From contig OZ218953.1 in NCBI GenBank assembly GCA_965112735.1, positions 1,364,001-1,428,000 of the forward strand: a stretch of DNA of 64,000 bases. The letters run 5' to 3'. The notes beneath the pieces were generated by a model, which saw nothing but the letters and a program-made list of their open reading frames with translations, was not told where the DNA came from and ran no database searches. Each line of letters begins with the position of its first letter. Position 1 is the first letter of the stretch. The position numbers and the translations under genes were made by a program. This DNA is from Phaeosaccion multiseriatum (taxonomy: Eukaryota; Protista; Ochrophyta, other classes). Positions 16,176-28,153 of this stretch are shown here, in pieces.

Positions 16176-18137
16176 ATGAGCGCAAGAATCTCTGTTCTCT
16201 CCGCCACTGCCGCCCCTCTCCCCCCCCCTCCCTTGGAGGAAGAGGGAGAATGCTCGCCTGGTTTCGCTTTACGCGAGGGCATCCTTGCGCCTGAGGCTTT
16301 GGAGACACTTGGGGTGGAGCTGGAAGGACTGTATGCCGGAGCACGGTCTGGTGAGGTGAGATTGAGCACCCCTCTCCGGGAGGCTTCCAGCAGACCCAGG
16401 GATCAGCAGAGAGGGAGTGGGAAGAGCCAGAGAGCGCGCAAGAGGCACCCCATAATGACACATGAATGCTCGCTCGCGTGTGCTTGCTATTGTTGCATTC
16501 TTCTGTGTGGCAGATTGAGCTGAAAGGGCGCAGCTTATGGGCACCCAAGAGGGACGAGAAGTGGGAAGAGGGACGCGCGCACGACGCCATACACTTCGGG
16601 GTGTTCGTGGCTCCCTCTGGTCGGGCAGAAGCCAGGTAGGAGATAGCTGGGTGAGTGGACCTTCGACTGACCATCTTGCCCATTGTGTGGCGGCTTCTTA
16701 TTGCTTCCCCTGCTTGCTGCTCCCTCTCGCCAGAGCCCTGGAAAGCGTGCCTGAGCTCTTCGACAGCCTCTGGGCAGCCTTGGCGGCGAGTGGGATTGAC
16801 GACAAGGGCGACGCTCCGCAACTGGCGGTAACTGTTCACTTTTATGCCCCAGGACAATACAGCTCCAGCCTGGCCCGGAAGCCGAAGGGAGGCGGGGATT
16901 TCGAGTGGCCGCTTACTCTCGTTGGGGTCCGAGGCTCCGTTGGCTGTGTCGGGGGAGCGGCGCAGACGAGGCCAGTACAAGCAGAGCAGAGCAAAGAAGC
17001 AGAAGAAGAAGAAGCCGAGGCATCGCAGCAAATACCCCCAGGCGCGTGCTTGCTATGGAATGGTGCGGAGGAGGACCACCTGTCCATCCTCCCAAGTGCT
17101 GAGAGTCGACTTGTCGTCACTCTGCGACGCCTCACGCCGCGGGCTGCAGCTCGCCTCGCAGGACCTGCTTCTAGGCCGGCCAGGCACCAGAGAGGGGATA
17201 CGCCTGACAAGGTCCAGGTGCGTGTCACTGCGCCGCACCCGCCCATCCATCCCCATCCCCTTTTTGGCCTACACGGCTGACTTCGGCTGCCTTCCCCATC
17301 CCTCCTCCGTTCGGTCGACCAACACACGAACGAGCAGGTGCTCATTCCGGGAGCGCCAGTGCTCGTGATGGAGGAGGGTGGCGGGGGCGGGGACTGCCGA
17401 AGGACCCCCACACTGGAGGCAGAGCATGTGCATGCTGTGTATGACACTATCGCCAAGCACTGGAGCCACACGCGGTACAAGGCGTGGTGAGTAATTTTGA
17501 GATGCCCTCCCTCCTTCGTGGTGAGTGGTGAGCTCCTTACTTCTCCCTTCGCTCCTTCCTGCTCTTCCCTCCTTTCTCCCCGTCGCCCGCTTCAACTTGA
17601 TGACGCTGAGCTCTTGCTGCTGCTGCTGCTGCTGCTGCTGCTGACACTGCTGCTGAATACTGGTCCTCCCACCACCCGACGGTGGCACAACAGGCCAAAG
17701 GTGGCGGACTTTCTGAGCGAGCGACACAGGCACGCCCTTATCGCCGATGTTGGGTGCGGTAATGGCAAGTACCTCCGCTGCACCAACGCCTCCAGGGGTC
17801 ATGTGCTGCTGGGCAGCGACGTCAGCACGCCCCTGCTGGAGGAGTGTTGCAGGCGCTTCCAGGAGAGCCAAGGCGAGAAGGTGGAGGTGCGTGTGGGCGA
17901 ATGTGTGAATGCAAATGAGTTAGTGAAAGTGCATGTCGGAGGAGCGTTGTTGGGATGGGAGGGGGGGGAGGGAGGGATGTGCGTTGCGCGTGGGGCGTTG
18001 GTGTTTGATGGTTTGGTGTGGGTTAGGGGTGCCCACCCTTGACGTGAAGGAAAGGCCTTCTTTTCTCCGTTCATCTGATGCTCTGCTGATAAAAGCTCTC
18101 TGCGGCAGTAGCAGAAAGCAGAGCAAGCAGCAGCGGC

Positions 18138-18174
<37 letters not shown>

Positions 18175-19302
18175 ACCCCGCTACTACTCGAGAAGGCCCC
18201 ACCCCCATGCCGTGTACTTCCTTCCTTTGTGTTCCTATACCCTGCATTGGTGTTCACGGCGCAGGTGGTGGGTGCAGATGCAATGACTCTGCCCTATCGC
18301 GACGCGTGTTTCGACGGCGCCATCTGTATCGCCGTTCTGCACCACTTATCCACGGTAAGGAAGGAAGGAAGGTCACCCTAGGTCACCTTCACCACCCAAA
18401 AACCTTTCCTCAAGAAAGAAGCGAATGAACGCCTCAATGCCCTCCCACCCCCTGCTGCCACTCCGCCTCCGACTACAACGCAAACAGGAGCCCCGGCGGC
18501 TGCAAGCCCTGCGTGAGATTCACCGCATCCTCAGGCCCGGGGCGGAGGTGCTGGTGTACGCGTGGGCGCGTGAGCAGGGCCAGGAGTCGCGGCGCCGCTT
18601 CGACCACGCGGATGTGCTTGTGCCCTGGAACGAGGGCAGGCAGCACCAAGACGAGGAGGTGAGGGAGGCGTGTCGAGGCAGGCGTGCTGAGGCGGGTGGG
18701 CGTGCGTGCGTGCGTGCGTGTGTGCTTGCGCCAGTCGTCAAGGCTCATGAATCAATCACACACCATCACACACCGCTCACTCATGGATAGTCCCCGACTG
18801 ATCGACTGACTGACTGACTCCCACTCACTGCGATCTCCCGACCAATTCACTGACTGACTGACTGACTGACTGACTGACTGACTGACTGACTGACTGACCG
18901 ACCGACCGACTATCCGACTGACTGACCGATTGCCCGACGGACCGACTGATTGACTGACTGACTGACTGACTGACTGACTGACTGACTGACTGACTGACTG
19001 CCTAACTGCCTGCCTGACTGACTGACTGACTGCCCTGTCCCTGCCGACCCTTTGCCGACCGTGCCTGTCTGCAGGTCCCCGTCAAAGCGGAGCACGCCGT
19101 GACTGACGTCCAAGGAAACCGCATCCTGCAGAGGTACTGCCACGTGTACCAAGAAGGGGAGCTCGAGGGCCTCTTCGCCCAGCTCGGGCCTATGTTTGAA
19201 GTTGTGCACAGCTTCTACGACTGCTCCAACTGGTGTGTGGTGGCTCGAAGGACGGACGTGGCTCATGGGAATCATCGCATGCCGCCACTACCAGAGGTAT
19301 AG
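16176..19302 (+). CDS. ALKBH8: ALKBH8/Trm9-like tRNA wobble-uridine methyltransferase with a degenerate AlkB-like N-terminal domain
   Basis: EAEHVHAVYDTIAKHWSHTRYKAWPKV, DVGCGNGKY, IAVLHHLST, VYAWAREQ, DVLVPW, RYCHVY..GEL, SNWCVV. Upstream AlkB-like strands (VHFYAPGQ ... RLVVTLR). Confidence 0.88.
18797..19031 (+). repeat. Intronic (CTGA)n microsatellite (tandem CTGAC branch-point-like motif)
   Basis: Long ACTG/CTGAC runs just upstream of the acceptor at ~19074. Confidence 0.9.
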
Positions 19303-22246
19303 ATAGAGAGAGAGAGAGAGGGGGGGGAGGCGCTCCGATGCTTCTTGTTTGTTCTCATGTTTTTGGACCCACAGGATGCCATACTTATTTTTATTTTCAA
19401 CCAGCAGCTTGCGATCTATCCCTCTCCTGTGTAAGTAGTTTGAGCAACAACGAAAAAAAAAAAAAAGGCCGAGGAAAGAAGGGGTCGAAATAGGGGGAGG
19501 ATTCCTATTAAGTCAATAAATTTGTCTCCCCCTTGTATGTCAATTAACCGCCCTGGATGTCAGTAGAATCAACATTTTGAGTGGGCTCAGGAAAAGAGGT
19601 ATTACGCACGCTACAGAGCACCACAGGCGAAGCGCTTCGGGAGATCTGAGGCAAAGACCGTATTCTAGATGTTGAGCAGCTTAAAGTCTGATTGTTGCGT
19701 CTGTATAGAGCGATTTAGGAGGTGAAATGTGCTGCTATGTTGACGAGATCTTTGCCCCTGAACAAGGGAGAAAGAGAGAGGCGTAGCTCACACAAGAGGT
19801 AATAATCTTCGGGCTGAATACGGATTATGTAGTCAAATAGCCGATGTGAAGCTGGGAGCGCGGTCTTAGGAGATAGTGGGCTAACATGTGGAGCTGAAAT
19901 GTCCGTTGCTTTGGCGGGAATTTGGGCCTCATACAAGGGGGGAGTGGGGGAAGAGCGTGTGCGAGCAAGAGCCCATGAGGGAGGAATGGCTTTGAGCAGA
20001 CTGCGACCCACATATGGACGTCGACGTTGAGCAGCTAAGAGTGCGATTGCAGGTGCTGTGGAGCAGAAGGGGTGAGGCGAGATGGAAACACCTATGGCAG
20101 CAGTTTTCACCTCAAAAATGGTGAGGAGAGGGAGGAGCGTGTGCGACCAGCAGACCACGAGATATGAAACCCTTGAGAAGACTTGAGGGATACATAGTCT
20201 GCTGAGTGCTGGGCAGCTCGAAGTGTCCTTTCAGGAGCTACAGAGTGAGGGAGAGAATTTACAAGTGTGAAGGGCCCCTTTTCGTCGTCATCCTGACCCT
20301 CGATCGAGGGGGAAGAGAGGGTATGACGATAGATATGGGCCAGATACAACGCGAGGCTACACCTCATGACCATGCGCCGATTTGGTACTCTTTACATGCT
20401 CTCCTTGGCGAGGATGCGATTTACAACGCTATCTATGTGTATATTCGTCATTTTAACCCAATTTCACGGATGGGCAGCTCCAACTGTACACACACTGCCC
20501 CTCCTCCCCTTATCGGTGCTGCTACGGCTACTACTACTATAGATGCTGCACGAGGCTCCGTCTTACCTGCGAAATCCGTCTCGGTAGCCCGCCAAGCCCT
20601 CCTCTGGCAGCTCCTAACCCCCCTGCCACGGCCTCCACCCCACTTTCTCTGCATACAGAGCGGTCAGCGACTTGAGTATGGCCTTGCGGCTCATCGCCCT
20701 GTCGCCCCTGAGCCACAATCGCTTCTCGACCATGTGCCACGACGAGCACCACCACCCACAGCAACAGCACGCTACCTCCCCCCCCCCCCTTCTCCGGCTC
20801 AGCTCCCATGGCCGCCTCGGCTGCCGATGGCGCGTCCAGCTGCTGCTTGATTGAGCTTCTCTCACTCGTGGCTGGTAGGCTTCAATACAATCACGCTCAT
20901 CCGCAGTAGCCAGGAGGAGCTGCAGCTGATCGTGCAGCAACGGCGTCCCCCGGGGTGGACGACGAGGCGGATAAGCTTGACTTCTATCTGGACGCCTGCT
21001 TCTCTTCCCCCCGCTCGTCTGGCCACTGCCGCTCGTGAACCCCTTGCTCCTTACCTTCTCGCTCCCTGAAGAGAGGCAGGATGGTCGCCGCAGTCGTTCT
21101 CCTGCCCCGGTAATGACCCTCGTGATGACCTAACCGAAGGGGCCAAAATTAGGGAGGTGGACACGAGGTGATTTCCCATGTCTGGTTAAGCTCGCTGAAG
21201 CTGAAAGTTGGACATCTGACAGCTCACACACTAGATGCCACAACATACCTTGTGTCGCCATTGACTCTGCCGGGAAGGTTCCTTCCCTTTCCTCTCCACC
21301 CTCATACTTCGCCACCTGTGCAGTGACCTCGGGAGAAGATGTCGAAGTCCCCCCGATAGCCCCACCACCCACGTCCCGCAATAACAGGGGGCAGGGGAGT
21401 TAGTATTACGCCCCTTAAGCAAGACCGATGCTCTGACAGGGCGTGGGATCGGCTGCTCATGACCTCACAAAAAGGACCCTTCAAAGGCAAAAGAGAGGGG
21501 AGTACACGTATGCGATTGTGCACATGGGATTATGACCTTTGAAGCTAAAACTTTGTCACAAGCCAGGCTACATATGAGTGATGTTGATCCCACTTGGACC
21601 CCTCGTAACTGCCAGGCAAAGCCTTCCATCTCACGCCCTCTCCCCCTCTCGTGCGCCCTCACATTTTCGGCCACCGCGGGCGACGACCTGCCATAGACCT
21701 CTTGCCCTCCGCCCATGGACAGCGGCGGTACGGGAGTCGTCAGACGTATCCTGCGGACCAGATGACGCCCTGATGGGCCCTGAAAATGGGTAGAATAGAG
21801 CAGCGTCCACGTCTCAGAGACATGCAACTGTGAAGGTGGAGTACCCTAACTTCAGGGGCCAAAGTGCCGACGAGCTGGAGGCGCAAGAGCATGCGTTGCA
21901 TATGAAAAGTTTCGTATACTCCTGGAGAAGAGATACTGTCTTGGACCCCGCTTATCTCTATGGGTATACCCCCCTCCGTCCTCTCTCTCTATCGAAACCA
22001 AGGTTGGAGAAAAACGCACCTTTGCCGCTCACCCGCTAACTCTTGCCACAAAGCTGCTGCGAGCACGCTCTCAGCTGCCCAATCCCGAGTTCACTGTGTT
22101 TTCCTCAAGCTTGCGCAAGCGCTTCGTCTGGGATAGTCGGTATGTCTTGTATTCGTCTCCTCCCTCACGTGCCCCACCCGATTCAAAAAAATGCCCAAAA
22201 AATTTCGGTCCTACTGACATCCAGGGCGGTTAATTGACATACAAGG

Positions 22247-25200
22247 GACCACCCCCCCAAAAAACACTTACGTGTCTATGTGAATGCCCGCAAGGGCACG
22301 ATGCACAATAAATTGCTGATCCAGGAGGTGGGACTGCTGTTCGCAGTGGAGGAGTGTACGTTGAATGTGGTGGCATGCTCGGCGGACCTGACCGGATGGG
22401 AGGGCCTGCTGCTGGGCTCGGCCGACAAGGTCATCGGCAGCTCCCTCAGGGAAGTCTTCGCGGGAGAGGTGTGCGTGGTCTTGGAGAGGCTGATGGCTCG
22501 ATTCGCCGATCTGGCGCGGGGAGACAGCGGTAGAGATTTCTCCTGGTTTGTGTTGGACTCTCTCTCCAAGGTGCGTGTGGGAGGGAGGGAGAGGGAGAGG
22601 GAGGGAAAGGGAGAGAAAAAGAGGGGGGGATGTTTGTTTGCAGAGCGCTCGCTGGAGGCGTGCTGGTTTGTGTGTTCGCGCGCGTATTGTGAACTCGTCT
22701 CCCACCCCTGCTCGCACAGTCTTGTTGCATCATCCGCTGCTGCTGCCTTGGCCGCTCAAAACTCCTACTCGTGGCCTCTTTGCTGACTCTTTGTTTCATT
22801 CCTTCTGGTGGTAGGTCGACTTCCTCCTGCCACACAACATGTGTGTGACACTCGCGCCCTCCAACCCAGGGATAGTGCTGCTGCAGCTTGAGCCCCTTCC
22901 TCGCTTGGCGGAGCCGAACCCCATGAATGAGATGGGAGTCCGAGCGGCGCGGATTGTAGAGACGCTTACCGCTTGCCCCGACATCCCGACCTTGGTCTCC
23001 AAGGCGTGTCAGAGCATCATGCAAGTGCTCCCCTGGGACAGGGGTATGGTGTACATGTTTCATCCGGACCAGAGCGGTGAAGTGGTCAGTGAGCATCTCC
23101 GACCAGAGGCGGACGCAGCAGAGCTTGGGGCTTCTTATCTTGGGCTGCGCTTTCCCGCCAGGGACGTTCCGCCCATCGCGAAGCTTCGTTACCTTCGTAA
23201 CATGTCCAGAGCGATTAAAGATATTCACGCAGGCTCGGTCGAGTTTGTGGGGCATACGGCGAATGGCGAGCCGGTGGACCTGAGCAGGAGCATCATGCGG
23301 CCGTGCGGCCCGTGCCAGACGGAGTACTACAAGAACATGAACGTGTGTAGTTGCATGTCTATTGGCATCGTCGTAGGTGGCGAGCTGTGGGGGCTCCTGT
23401 CATTCCACTCCTACTCGGGGTGCCTCTGGCCCACGGCGGACCAGCGTATGTTGTCCCACGCGCTGGCATCCACGGTGGGGGTGCAGATTGAGCGGTATCA
23501 ACGGGCGGCGGAAACTGCAGACAAGGCTTGCCTGGGGCAGATCCTTTTGAGTCTGCCCACATCGGATAACCTGGCCTCTTTCCTAGAGGCCCACTCGAGT
23601 ACCCTGCTCAACTTGCTGGACGTCAAGGGAATCTGGGCGAAGGACCTTGTCACGGGCGCCGTGGTGTTTGAGACTGGCGACAGAGAGAACAGGCTGTTTG
23701 TCGAGTCAGACTTGGTCAAGGCCAGCCCTTACGGTCGCTCCTATGGGGTCTTTCCCGATCCATTACTGGCCTACGCGTGCATTTCGAACCAGGACTTTAC
23801 ACTGGTGCTCACGAGACCTTCCAAGGCCCACGATGTCAAGTGGGCAGGGGACCCCGACGGTGCGGGAGAGCGTGCTGATGCATCGCAAATGCGTCCGAGG
23901 AGGTCTTTCGCTGTGTTTCTAGAGAAAGCAAGGACAGAGGTCCTGTCCTGGTCGCAGGTGAGTGAGTGAGTGAGTGAGTGAGTGCGTGAGTGAGTGAGCG
24001 AACAGGCTCAGTAGTTAGATCGTTTGCTTTTGACTCTCAAGTGAGTTTGAGTGAGTGAGTGAGTGAGTGAGCGAGTGAGTGAGTGGGTAAGTGGATGAGT
24101 GAGGGAGGGAGGGAGTAGCTTCTTGAGTGGGTAGGTGAGTAGGTGAGGTGACCGAGGGAGTGGGTGTGTGAGGTGCGCGGGGGAGGGAGGAGTGAGTGAA
24201 TGAGAGGGTGAGCGAGGAAGTGCGCGTGCCTCGCTCTTTCACCTGAGCCGCCGAACTTCTCCAGGACATTGACATTTCATGATTGTCCCCTCCCCCTCCT
24301 CCCCTTGCCGTGCGGCTTGTCTCAATGGCTTATTCCCTCCCTCCCCTCAATCCCTCCCCTCCCTCCCTCCCCTCCCTCCCTCCCCTCCCTCCCTCCCTCC
24401 CCTCCCCCTCCCCCCCCCCCACAGCACGAGATGGATCTCATCGCGACTCTGGCTGACACCATCGTGGCCTACATCCACTCCACCATGCTGAAACGCGTGC
24501 AGGAGGACTTGAACAAGAGCATGTACGAGAAGAGCCTCGCGGAGGAGGCCAGTCGCAACGATCACGAGGTAGGTACATCGTTCGCTTAGTGTTCAGCTGG
24601 AGTTTGGTTGTGCTCCCTCTTTCTGACTCTCGCTTTCCGTCGCCTGCGGAGCCTTCGCACCTCGCTTCTGCCTCTGGCCCCCACCCATACACCTCTCCCT
24701 GAACCCCCCCCCCCCCCTCCCTCTCTCTCTCTCTTACGCCTCACATTCAGTTCTTTGCACACATGTCGCACGAGCTGCGGACGCCCTTTCACGGTACGTT
24801 GGCCGTTGCTACTGCAGCGGTTGCTGTTCTTGCTGTGCGTCTTTCATGCCCTCATCCCTTGGCGTGCTGCACATCAATCATGCATGGGCGATAGACAGGT
24901 AGTGCTTTTACTCTCTCTGGTTACTATTCTTATGTATTGTATCGTACCTGCATGTGATGTGCCTAAAACTAAAATACAGGGGTGATGAGCTCTCTCCAGA
25001 TCATCCGCGAGGAGGAGGGGATGGCAGTCAAACAAAGGAACGAGTTCATAGACACGGCCCTTCAGAGCGGCGCCACCATGCTGCAGACGCTCGATAACAT
25101 TCTCAACATCGCCAAGCGCAAGCAAAAGGTAAGCGAGCAAGTACGCAAAGAAGCAAAGACAAAGGTTGAATTCCTTGCACGGCATTACTGTCCCTATCGC

Positions 25201-26868
25201 TTCGCTCATTCTTTCTTCTTTCTAACGTATCTCTCTCTATCTCTCTCTCCCTCACAATACTTCTGTTCTTTTTTTTTTTAATGTACAGGGAACCGATCCC
25301 GTCCTGACAATTTTCTGCCTAGAGGACGTAGTTGCGCGAGCCGTGGAAGGCATGCGTCACTTTGCCAGCCTCTCCGGGGTTGTCTTCCTGGACCGTTACA
25401 CCTTCAGCCCCACGCTCGCGGTCCGAGGAGATGAGCCCGGCATTAGGCAAATAGTGTCAAACCTGGCCAGCAACGCCATCAAATTCACTCCGGAGGGGGG
25501 GCTTGTGAATGTGTCCGTAGCCATTTGTGACACTTTAAGAGAGGCGAAGAGCATTTGGGAAGGGGAGGCCAAAACCTATGCCGCCTCCAAGCTTCACTCC
25601 TCAGTGGGTCCGAATCATGTGGACCACGGGACGACAGGGCAGCAGAGCAGCAGCAGCAGCAGCAAGAAGTGGATTGTGGTCATCGTGACCGACACGGGCT
25701 GCGGCATCCCTGGCGGTGAGTGAGTATGAGGGAACAAGGAAGGAAGGGTGAATCGATAGAAAAGAAGGGATGGATGGCCCACTCTCCTCCTTATGCGCGT
25801 GTGGATAATGTGCTCTGCTCTCCCCTGCCTGTGGCATTGGCACCAACTCCCCCCCCCCCCTCCCTCTCCCTTGCTTCAACAACCACCCACAACCGCGCAG
25901 CTGAACTGGATAACATTCTGTCACCTTACGTGCAAGTGTCCAGCGGGGTCAGCAAAGTGTACCAAGGCACTGGGCTGGGTCTGCACATCTGCTTCCTCAG
26001 CGTGTACGGTATGCAAGGCTGTATAGGCGTCGCATCAGAGCTCGGAAAAGGCACCACCTTCATCACCATGCTACCCGTTGAAGTCGTGTCTTCAGTGCTT
26101 GTCCCACCGGCAATCAAGCGAACCGCTATTCCCCGGATAGAGCCAGGCGCCAAGACACATTTGATTGTCGTTGTGGACGACAGCAAGCCAAATGTCAAGC
26201 TCGCTAGCAAGCAGATTCGCAACGCCTTGGGGGATAAAACGGAGGTGCTTACCGCCTTCAATGGCAAGGAGGGCTTGGACCTTGTATTGCAGCTGCGCGA
26301 GGAGGGGAGGGTCATCCACGGGGTGGTTATGGACTACCACATGCCCATCATGTCAGGCTTGGAGGCTATTCACGCCATTCGCGAGTATGAGAAGGAGCAT
26401 ACTGTGTTGCACCCTACGCCCATCGCGGCCTTTACTGCTGATGTGACGGAGAAGTCGAGGTCCGAGTTGCTTCTCGCAGGGGCGACGATGATCATCAACA
26501 AACCCGTCTCCAAGGGGGACATTGCGGAGGCTTGCTTCGCCATGATCTCTGCGAGTGGCGACTCTGACGACGACCAGAAGGATGGATGGAAGGGTGGATG
26601 GAAGGATGAGGGGGCTTCTGCCCCGGCCCCTGTCGCTTCCTCTCCTGCTGAGCAGCAGCAGCACCAGCAGCAGCAGCAACAACAACAACAGCAGCAGCAG
26701 CAGCAGCAGAGCGGTGAAGGTGACGCGGCCCTTGCGGCTTGTGACAAGCCGTTGCCCACCGTACGCCCCACACTTCGCCCTCAGTCCTCGGGACCGCGCT
26801 CTCTCGGTACCCCCCCCCCTCAATTCCCGCGCGCTGCCACACGCCCCCATTCTCCTACGGGTCCTTAA
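22247..26868 (+). CDS. Phytochrome: PAS-GAF-PHY-histidine kinase-receiver (5' end uncertain)
   Basis: Exons ~22247-22570, 22815-23957, 24425-24568, 24751-24793, 24980-25128, 25289-25715, 25901-26868 join in frame. PAS_2 LIQEVGLLFAVEE; GAF DRGMVYMFHPDQSGEVVSE, YLGLRFPARDVP, DLSRSIMRPCGPCQTEYYKNM, LWGLLSFH; PHY tongue WAG..PRRSF; HisKA SHELRTP; HATPase NAIKFT, DTGCGI, GTGLGL; REC VDDS..MDYHMP..KP. Confidence 0.93.
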
Positions 26869-28153
26869 GATCCTTCGAGACGCAGTGAGCCTCTGATTAA
26901 GAGAGAGGGATGGGTGGATGATGACGAGAACAGAGCTCGCCTGCCTTCAGAGCTTCTTTTCCCGAGCCTTAAACCGAGTTGAGGAGGCAGAGAGAGTAGG
27001 GGACAGCGCCGTGCCCGCCTTTGGGGGTTTGGGAGGTCAAGGCTTCACTCATTTAGTACATAACGGGCGGACGCCCCCCTTGGCTCGATGCCTACGTACC
27101 AACACTTACCGTACATGCATAAAGTGTTCTGACCACATCATATTATGCTTGATCTACAGCATCAGCCAGAGGCCACTCTTTTTGAGTTTCCGAAATGGTG
27201 GGGGAAGAGTATCGGAAGAGTAATACGGATCAACCCCGTTTGACCCCCTCCCCTCTCAGTACAAGCACAAGGACGGGCAGGAGGCCCAACCAAGAGACAC
27301 GAAGGGTGGGTTGCCCCCATTGGTTCTGTTTCCATGTTCCAACTGTGCGTATCCGTACACACGTACGCATGCTGCTGCGCTGCTGCTGGGGTCAAAGGGC
27401 TTCCTTCACTTCTGCATGCCCACTTTCCTCTCCAACTGGCAGTGAAGAGTAAACCCGGGACCCGACTCGGCAGGTGGGCGAGTGCAAGTGTTGCATGCTG
27501 TGGAGGGAGCGCTATTCAGGCACCAGGTGTGGCCCCGAAGTCGGCAAGAAGCCACAAGGGTTTCCGCAGCATGCATGCGCCGCACCGCCAAGGCTTCTTG
27601 GTGGTGTGGGGGGGGGGGGCTCAAATGGATGGTGTCATCCCAGTGCCGCTGCTGCCGCCGTGCTGCCCTGCTGCTGCTGGAGCCTCTTTCTGTCTCCAGT
27701 GCGCTTGCGCTCTCCCCGGTGGCCCGCAAAGTGTGTGGCGGGCATGGGACATGACATACTCGCGTCGGTCGTACGGTACGCTCTCTCCCCCCCCATGTGG
27801 GGCTTGCATCTTCTCCTTCTCTCGGTCACCCGACCTTCCCAGACCGTCTTCTCAATGTTGACGCGCTTGACGCGCTTCGCCTATCCTTGACGGGCCTCGC
27901 TTGCCAGCATCAGATCCAGCAGCCTTACCAAGCCCCTCCCCTCTGAGCGGGCGAGTTCCACATCCCGGCTTGTTCTTGTGGAGCATGGGCGCGGGAGTGC
28001 GAAGAGACAACCCTCTGGTACTAAACGGAAAAAACCTCTTCTTTCGTTTCCCTTCGTTTCCAGCTGCTTCCAAATTCAAGCCTGCTCGACAAACTGTCTT
28101 CCCCCTCCCTCACAGCGTCCGTCCCGGCAGCAATTCGATTCGCTCCCAACATC

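Follow-up and report, generated by a model that had tools for sequence, protein, structure and literature searches.

The question raised by this locus is whether a phytochrome can remain a working light receptor when one of the most constant residues of its bilin pocket is replaced. Few residues of the phytochrome superfamily are as conserved as His260, which plays a central part in the protonation of the chromophore. To our knowledge, this residue has been studied mainly by means of laboratory mutants, and the natural departure known to us is that of the tandem-Cys phytochromes. In the gene described here the position is occupied by Gln. The gene lies on the forward strand of contig OZ218953.1 (assembly GCA_965112735.1) of the ochrophyte Phaeosaccion multiseriatum, within a stretch of 64,000 nucleotides (positions 1,364,001 to 1,428,000) that is called the window below and to which all coordinates refer. 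An earlier note, made from the letters of the window, had described an intact algal phytochrome with an atypical pocket. The analysis of the gene, its transcripts and its relatives points to an intact and expressed phytochrome gene. On balance, its product is probably a working bilin photoreceptor kinase in which the chromophore is attached to the Cys of the GAF domain and has its pKa shifted by the Gln.

The gene spans 22301-26868 (+) and consists of seven exons and six GT-AG introns (160-467 nt, all GT...(C/T)AG). After splicing, 3144 coding nucleotides and a stop codon remain, with no internal stop, corresponding to a protein of 1047 amino acids. The earlier note had seen a complete PAS-GAF-PHY-HisKA-HATPase-REC reading frame beginning at 22247. 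The domain set was found as described, but not the single frame. Translation of 22247-26868 in one frame contains many stops, which rules out one open reading frame (ORF) across this interval, and in the list of ORFs the domain pieces lie on separate ORFs in differing frames. The proposed start had to be given up as well, since a terminal inverted repeat (TIR) of a transposon ends with base 22247. In BLASTP searches, residues 1-941 of the spliced protein form a single collinear alignment with full-length stramenopile phytochromes (E down to 5e-160), in which no exon is absent or out of place.

Public contigs placed on 21300-27200 come from three runs of one sample and from run X5, which belongs to another sample and another study. 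Within the gene the contig depth is about 60. The contigs of the three runs contain the introns and cover 22220-23949 with 0 differences. Run X5 carries the label 'DNA?', but it behaves as cDNA, as it provides exon pieces only at this locus (depth 1.4-5.5). In one X5 contig 22568 is joined directly to 22813, meaning that intron 1 is removed; a shared AG explains the offset of 2 nt. A second contig begins at 25900, compared to the predicted start of exon 7 at 25901, and a third spans 23162-23446 with 0 differences. The phytochrome gene is thus transcribed and spliced. As its frame is intact, its splice sites are in place and one contig shows it spliced, the idea of a pseudogene was rejected. 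At 23316-23318, where the earlier note had considered that reads might reveal a His codon (CAC or CAT), the contigs of both studies have the Gln codon CAG, again with 0 differences. One X5 contig matches the H-box exon (24751-24794) and then reads ...HGVISAVRIVR where the phytochrome gene has HGVMSSLQIIRE. An alternative exon was considered as the source of this loose end at 24794 and rejected, as its letters are not in the window. Most likely, the contig stems from the spliced mRNA of a paralogous histidine kinase gene that has a near-identical H-box exon.

By its domains, the gene is read as encoding an intact nuclear PAS-GAF-PHY-HisKA-HATPase-REC hybrid histidine kinase of the phytochrome type. 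Pfam searches with the gene pieces returned PAS_2, GAF, PHY, HATPase_c and Response_reg in the order of a phytochrome hybrid kinase, so that PAS, GAF and PHY follow one another as in the canonical knotted photosensory module. HisKA has no Pfam score, since it is split by introns: the H-box is divided over exons 4 and 5, and the domain becomes visible only after splicing. Relatives carry PF00512 at the collinear place. The spliced model has the residues expected in a hybrid kinase, i.e., HMSHELRTP, NLASNAIKF, DTGCGI and GTGLGL in the kinase and DD, MDYHMP, T and K in the receiver. The GAF-PHY exon matches solved bacteriophytochrome modules with an E-value of 9e-34 (phmmer). Its AlphaFold (AF2) model has a predicted local distance difference test score (pLDDT) of 86.6 and a predicted template modelling score (pTM) of 0.86, and Foldseek superposes this model on PAS-GAF-PHY structures with a template modelling score of about 0.8.

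An exhaustive HMMER search, covering 1.84 billion representative proteins, resulted in 4890 matches, the best of which are 32-40% identical. The named top matches are from Sphacelaria rigidula, Tribonema minus, Ishige okamurae (annotated as 'phytochrome') and Seminavis robusta. A maximum-likelihood tree was made from 58 photosensory modules by a quick search, with midpoint rooting only; in it, the protein falls within a clade of 29 rows, supported at 99% by the Shimodaira-Hasegawa-like approximate likelihood ratio test (SH-aLRT). Those labelled rows of diatoms and brown algae that were part of the tree (phytochromes of Seminavis, Ishige, Laminaria and Sphacelaria) belong to this clade, with the bacterial and fungal rows outside. 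Alignment and tree therefore place the protein in the stramenopile phytochrome clade, which, together with the seven-exon gene, bears out the earlier description of an intact algal phytochrome. Since the members of the clade are only about 35% identical among themselves, the low identity of the Phaeosaccion protein is typical for the family. A phaeoviral origin was rejected: the gene has six introns, and of the homologues retrieved FirrV-1 H1 is just a single, distantly related one. Local identity is highest for the relative P0004 (40%), which is encoded on a contig of eukaryotic appearance (L001/L002; Logan contigs SRR32080885/6), beside CAP and RING-finger genes; its phytochrome was called as two adjacent ORFs, GAF-PHY-HisKA followed by HATPase-REC.

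To describe the bilin pocket, its columns were tallied over two sets of 150 homologues (n=300); the residue numbering of the model is, by coincidence, within two of that of DrBphP. The translation confirmed the motifs DVP, CGPCQ and NMNVCSC that had been claimed before, at the positions given in Table 1. When aligned to solved phytochromes with phmmer, Gln falls on the column of the conserved His, and CGPC has its second Cys on the Cph1-Cys259/DrBphP-259 column. The plant/cyanobacterial-type GAF Cys reported earlier is thus present. In the His260 column, His occurs in 294 and Tyr in 6 of the 300 homologues, and Gln in none (0/300), so that Gln is found in the Phaeosaccion protein alone. The Tyr-bearing rows look like multi-GAF, non-phytochrome matches. 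His260 is nevertheless near-universal instead of absolute, as there are natural exceptions with Cys (PMC11880981). Of the pocket that had been called atypical, the Gln stands out most in this comparison; the CxxC, the Cys at column 256 and DVP are all found in relatives. CxxC followed by His is present in six of them (CSKCH in P0007, P0213, P0214 and P0216; CNRCH in P0225 and P0229), relatives of the brown-algal (Sphacelaria) type commonly have Cys at column 256 without the second one, and DVP occurs in at least six homologues. We regard Cys254, Cys268 and Cys270 as a probable lineage decoration. It is the natural Gln at a near-invariant pocket residue that appears to be new, and not the kind of system, several of the 'atypical' features being common to relatives.

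Besides this position, the pocket is well kept. The bilin contacts Tyr176, Phe203, Asp207, Pro209, Tyr216, Arg222, Arg254, Tyr263, Ser274 and His290 are retained, as are both motifs of the PHY tongue, W-x-G in the form of WAG and PRxSF in the form of PRRSF. All 11 invariant columns of a 60-row alignment are kept as well. Judged from this conservation, the protein is a divergent phytochrome, not a wrecked one. The four Cys of the pocket are within 17 residues of each other, and in the AF2 model the predicted helix that bears Cys257 and Gln258 begins at the Pro of CGPC. The codons of this motif (23298-23315) are arranged in two near-identical 9-nt units, CGGCCGTGC and GGCCCGTGC (R-P-C / G-P-C), which suggests that the second Cys pair may have come from local slippage or conversion. 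Compared to the homologues, there is no net length change at CGPC.

The place of chromophore attachment depends on where the protein starts. The N-terminus, MHNKLLIQEVG, has no Cys before the IQ of the knot motif, and the absence of an N-terminal attachment Cys, as stated in the earlier note, was confirmed. An in-frame TGA at 22235-37 lies 64 nt upstream of the ATG, within the 49-nt inverted repeat. Very probably, 22301 is the true start codon, in which case the protein would be of the type with a GAF Cys only. Relatives with a GAF Cys likewise have short, Cys-free N-terminal extensions of 7-13 residues. An upstream coding exon providing an N-terminal Cys was considered and is judged unlikely. 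Apart from the TGA and the very short N-termini of the GAF-Cys relatives, only two acceptor candidates occur between the TGA and the ATG, both of the AAG type, whereas the six real acceptors are all CAG or TAG. Further upstream come the TIR element of 2.7 kb and then the apparent end of another gene.

Table 1. Positions in the window of the phytochrome gene, its pocket motifs and the adjoining repeat element.
Feature	Position	Strand	Reading or evidence
High-copy element with 49-nt TIRs (19530-19578 and 22199-22247, 92% complementary)	19530..22247		Outside the gene, marks its 5' boundary
Exon 1: start codon and PAS (MHNKLLIQEVG...)	22301..22570	+	PAS_2 E 2.8e-5; exon 1-2 junction in X5 contig
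Exon 2: end of PAS, GAF, PHY (381 codons)	22815..23957	+	GAF E 1.5e-12, PHY E 6e-13
DVP (DIP variant): Asp207 and Pro209 kept, Ile208 replaced by Val	23163..23171	+	Column: I 137/150, V 3/150
CGPCQ: Cys254 = DrBphP column 256; Cys257 = Cph1 Cys259 column (GAF attachment site); Gln258 = His260 column	23304..23318	+	
NMNVCSC: Cys268 and Cys270 = DrBphP columns 270 and 272; Ser274 kept	23334..23354	+	Column 272: S/T 137/150, C 2/150
PHY tongue with conserved motifs KWAGDP and RPRRSF	23838..23909	+	Alignment, direct reading
Exon 3: linker helix toward kinase	24425..24568	+	GT-AG borders, frame kept, collinear with relatives
Exon 4: H-box HMSHELRTPFH(G); phospho-accepting His codon 24769-71	24751..24793	+	Reading of spliced model
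Exon 5: remaining dimerisation/phosphotransfer helices	24980..25128	+	Gene model, collinear with relatives
Exon 6: ATP-binding domain; N-box 25460-86, G1 box DTGCGI 25691-708	25289..25715	+	HATPase_c E 8e-9
Exon 7: G2 box GTGLGL 25966-83, then receiver, then low-complexity tail	25901..26868	+	Response_reg E 3.4e-13
Exon 7, receiver: DD 26167-87; phospho-Asp in VVMDYHMP 26323-46; Thr and Lys	25901..26868	+	Direct reading
Exon 7, end: low-complexity tail of about 100 residues with poly-Gln; stop codon 26866-68	25901..26868	+	Direct reading

The element that borders the gene is approximately 2.7 kb long, and the contig depth over 21300-22284 is in the thousands. No Pfam domain was detected in its ORFs and no transposase was recognisable; around 19530-22247 no clear target-site duplication was seen. 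As the element ends 53 bp upstream of the start codon, the promoter or the 5' untranslated region of the phytochrome gene may lie inside it. Beyond the element, the coding part of an upstream gene on the same strand appears, by eye, to end near 19300, with an A-run near 19450. An ORF at 17497-18042 (+) has sub-threshold matches to methyltransferase domains (Methyltransf_25, E 6e-5). Within the phytochrome gene, intron 2 (23958-24424) is mostly made up of GTGAGT-like and CCCT-like simple repeats, and the poly-Gln near the C-terminus (CAG/CAA; 26640-26700) comprises about 25 residues, past the end of all relatives.

If the protein works as a photoreceptor, a linear tetrapyrrole would be held in the GAF pocket and be thioether-linked to Cys257, as no N-terminal Cys is available. 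Light would isomerise the bilin and cause the PHY tongue to refold; autophosphorylation of the H-box His would be modulated in turn, and the phosphate passed on to the receiver Asp of the same protein. The Gln at the His260 position would most likely lower the proton affinity of the chromophore. As a consequence, its red and far-red states would not be abolished, but would depend on pH or be shifted or bleached in part. By analogy with Cph1 H260Q, a pH-dependent and possibly partly bleached photocycle is the most likely consequence of the Gln (PMC12420706). The earlier note had left four alternatives side by side, i.e., a spectrally shifted, a pH-sensitive, a redox-gated or a light-blind protein, and sequence by itself does not choose among them. 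The behaviour of this mutant does lend support to pH sensitivity, and a loss of light sensing is disfavoured by the retention of all other bilin-contact and tongue residues.

A number of observations weigh against a working photoreceptor, and several of them also speak for a gene on its way out. A recent, possibly strain-specific change from His to Gln and the nearby transposon would then have impaired an ordinary phytochrome that is still transcribed. Indeed, CAG is a single transversion from CAC or CAT, i.e., one base from a His codon, and both sequenced samples possibly represent the same strain. The TIR lies just 53 bp before the ATG, expression is thinly covered at the X5 depth given above, and only six residues precede the IQ at the centre of the knot, fewer than in every relative examined. 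Moreover, at 8 of the 48 GAF-PHY columns that are conserved in at least 85% of the 60-row alignment the protein differs from the majority (E>Q, I>V, R>K, L>M, H>Q, L>Y, G>N and G>P), which is more than in 55 of the 59 other rows, and its branch is long (1.13 compared to a median of 0.65). Together, these departures and the long branch make relaxed constraint possible. Conservation of the Gln cannot be demonstrated either, as no close orthologue was found among the 1.84 billion representative proteins (best 40%). The metagenome contigs contained no orthologue, only two loci at 31% identity, and a word search on the motif region, restricted to proteins of 210-667 amino acids, returned nothing similar. 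In total, the protein collections without an orthologue amount to about 15 billion sequences. Selection on Gln258 is therefore not assessable with the collections searched. On the other hand, the 3.1 kb of coding sequence and the six introns show no stop, frameshift or broken splice site, kinase and receiver retain their catalytic residues, and most of the departures (E>Q, I>V, R>K, L>M) are conservative. In Cph1, the same H260Q change leaves the protein functional (PMC12420706). Taking both sides into account, decay of the gene is given a fairly low probability.

The pocket Cys give rise to the other explanations. The protein might be a light-blind derivative that binds or uses no bilin and acts as a thiol redox kinase, its output changing as CGPC cycles between dithiol and disulfide. 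The letters of CGPC are identical to those of the thioredoxin active-site motif, a helix is predicted to start with its Pro, four Cys are crowded in the pocket and the conserved His is absent; for phytochromes signalling without bilin there are bacterial precedents (Vuillet et al. 2007; Fixen et al. 2014, both as cited in PMC6879726). However, retention of the remaining bilin contacts and of both tongue motifs would not be expected in a protein that can do without its chromophore, six relatives combine CxxC with the His and so show the two changes to be independent, the motif sits in a GAF domain without thioredoxin fold, and the cytosol is reducing. A light-blind redox kinase is accordingly rated as quite unlikely. 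It is improbable, too, that the pocket Cys are functional in a protein that does bind bilin, whether because a CGPC disulfide withholds Cys257 and so makes attachment and light sensing redox-gated, or because the bilin undergoes reversible addition of Cys254 or Cys270, in a two-Cys photocycle of hitherto undescribed geometry that the loss of His260 makes possible. On the model, redox-gated attachment would be stereochemically conceivable, as the helix begins at the Pro of CGPC and CxxC pairs placed in this way easily form disulfides. In a two-Cys photocycle, Cys257 would anchor ring A and Cys254 or Cys270 would add reversibly to C10, giving a blue or violet state, with Gln replacing the obstructing His. 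Cys254 is placed four residues before the His260 position, the natural tandem-Cys phytochromes (TCCP and TCEP) replace exactly His260 and form a second thioether, resulting in blue-violet/yellow-orange cycles (PMC11880981), and marine algal phytochromes are tuned to short wavelengths (PMC13150293). In TCCP and TCEP, though, it is position 260 itself that carries the second Cys, whereas here this residue is Gln, and relatives carry Cys254 along with the His. Such a photocycle consequently has little probability.

The pH-dependent photoreceptor kinase thus remains the preferred reading. A natural, expressed phytochrome with Gln at position 260 could show how far the pocket can drift while light sensing persists, and also whether marine algae use chromophore pKa or thiols for spectral tuning. 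Redox-gated attachment or a two-Cys photocycle would, if true, represent a novel mechanism by which a marine alga tunes a phytochrome. Should the protein show an ordinary red/far-red response or no activity, it would be one more divergent member of a fast-evolving family.

Compared to known systems, the protein is closest in organization to the stramenopile phytochromes, i.e., diatom DPH and the brown-algal and xanthophyte proteins (Ishige okamurae, Seminavis robusta, Tribonema minus). It shares the PAS-GAF-PHY-HisKA-HATPase-REC architecture with them and is collinear over 940 residues, at 30-40% identity. Characterised diatom phytochromes bind biliverdin, and outside the diatoms the function of the stramenopile clade has been called 'cryptic' (PMC13150293). 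The diatom homologues that were compared carry an N-terminal Cys, while the Phaeosaccion protein lacks it and has the GAF Cys together with Gln for the conserved His. The six metagenome relatives with CxxC-His have Cys at the same columns, 256 and 259, and those with CSKCH also share the short, Cys-free N-terminus and are among the nearest rows by tree path. Unlike the Phaeosaccion protein, all six keep His260. Dual-Cys bacteriophytochromes (DCB) need a Cys in the PAS knot in addition to the GAF Cys, and here no Cys precedes IQ. The earlier comparison of CGPC with thioredoxin holds for the four letters and for their predicted position at the N-terminus of a helix, and for nothing beyond that, as the motif is part of a GAF domain and not of a thioredoxin fold.

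The chromophore-less bacteriophytochrome of Rhodopseudomonas palustris has reportedly lost its attachment Cys, whereas the Phaeosaccion protein keeps both this Cys and the rest of the pocket. As cited in PMC6879726, the R. palustris protein is described as having evolved from a light into a redox sensor (Vuillet et al. 2007), and apo-bacteriophytochromes as still signalling (Fixen et al. 2014). To that extent, it is a precedent for a phytochrome scaffold sensing redox through Cys. TCCP (cyanobacterial) and TCEP (algal) also lack His260, but have Cys at this position, directly after the GAF Cys, a feature that defines the family; equivalents are DrBphP M259C/H260C and Cph1 H260C (PMC11880981). 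The Gln of the Phaeosaccion protein places it outside this family. A counterpart of its pocket is the engineered H260Q variant of Cph1 from Synechocystis, which has the same position of GAF-Cys attachment and the same change at 260. Although His260 substitutions in Cph1 can abolish chromophorylation, H260Q is chromophorylated and functional, with a near-normal far-red-absorbing state (Pfr) and a pKa that is shifted in both states (PMC12420706). While that variant is a laboratory mutant of a cyanobacterial protein, the Gln described here is natural, belongs to a eukaryotic clade and is accompanied by Cys at columns 256, 270 and 272.

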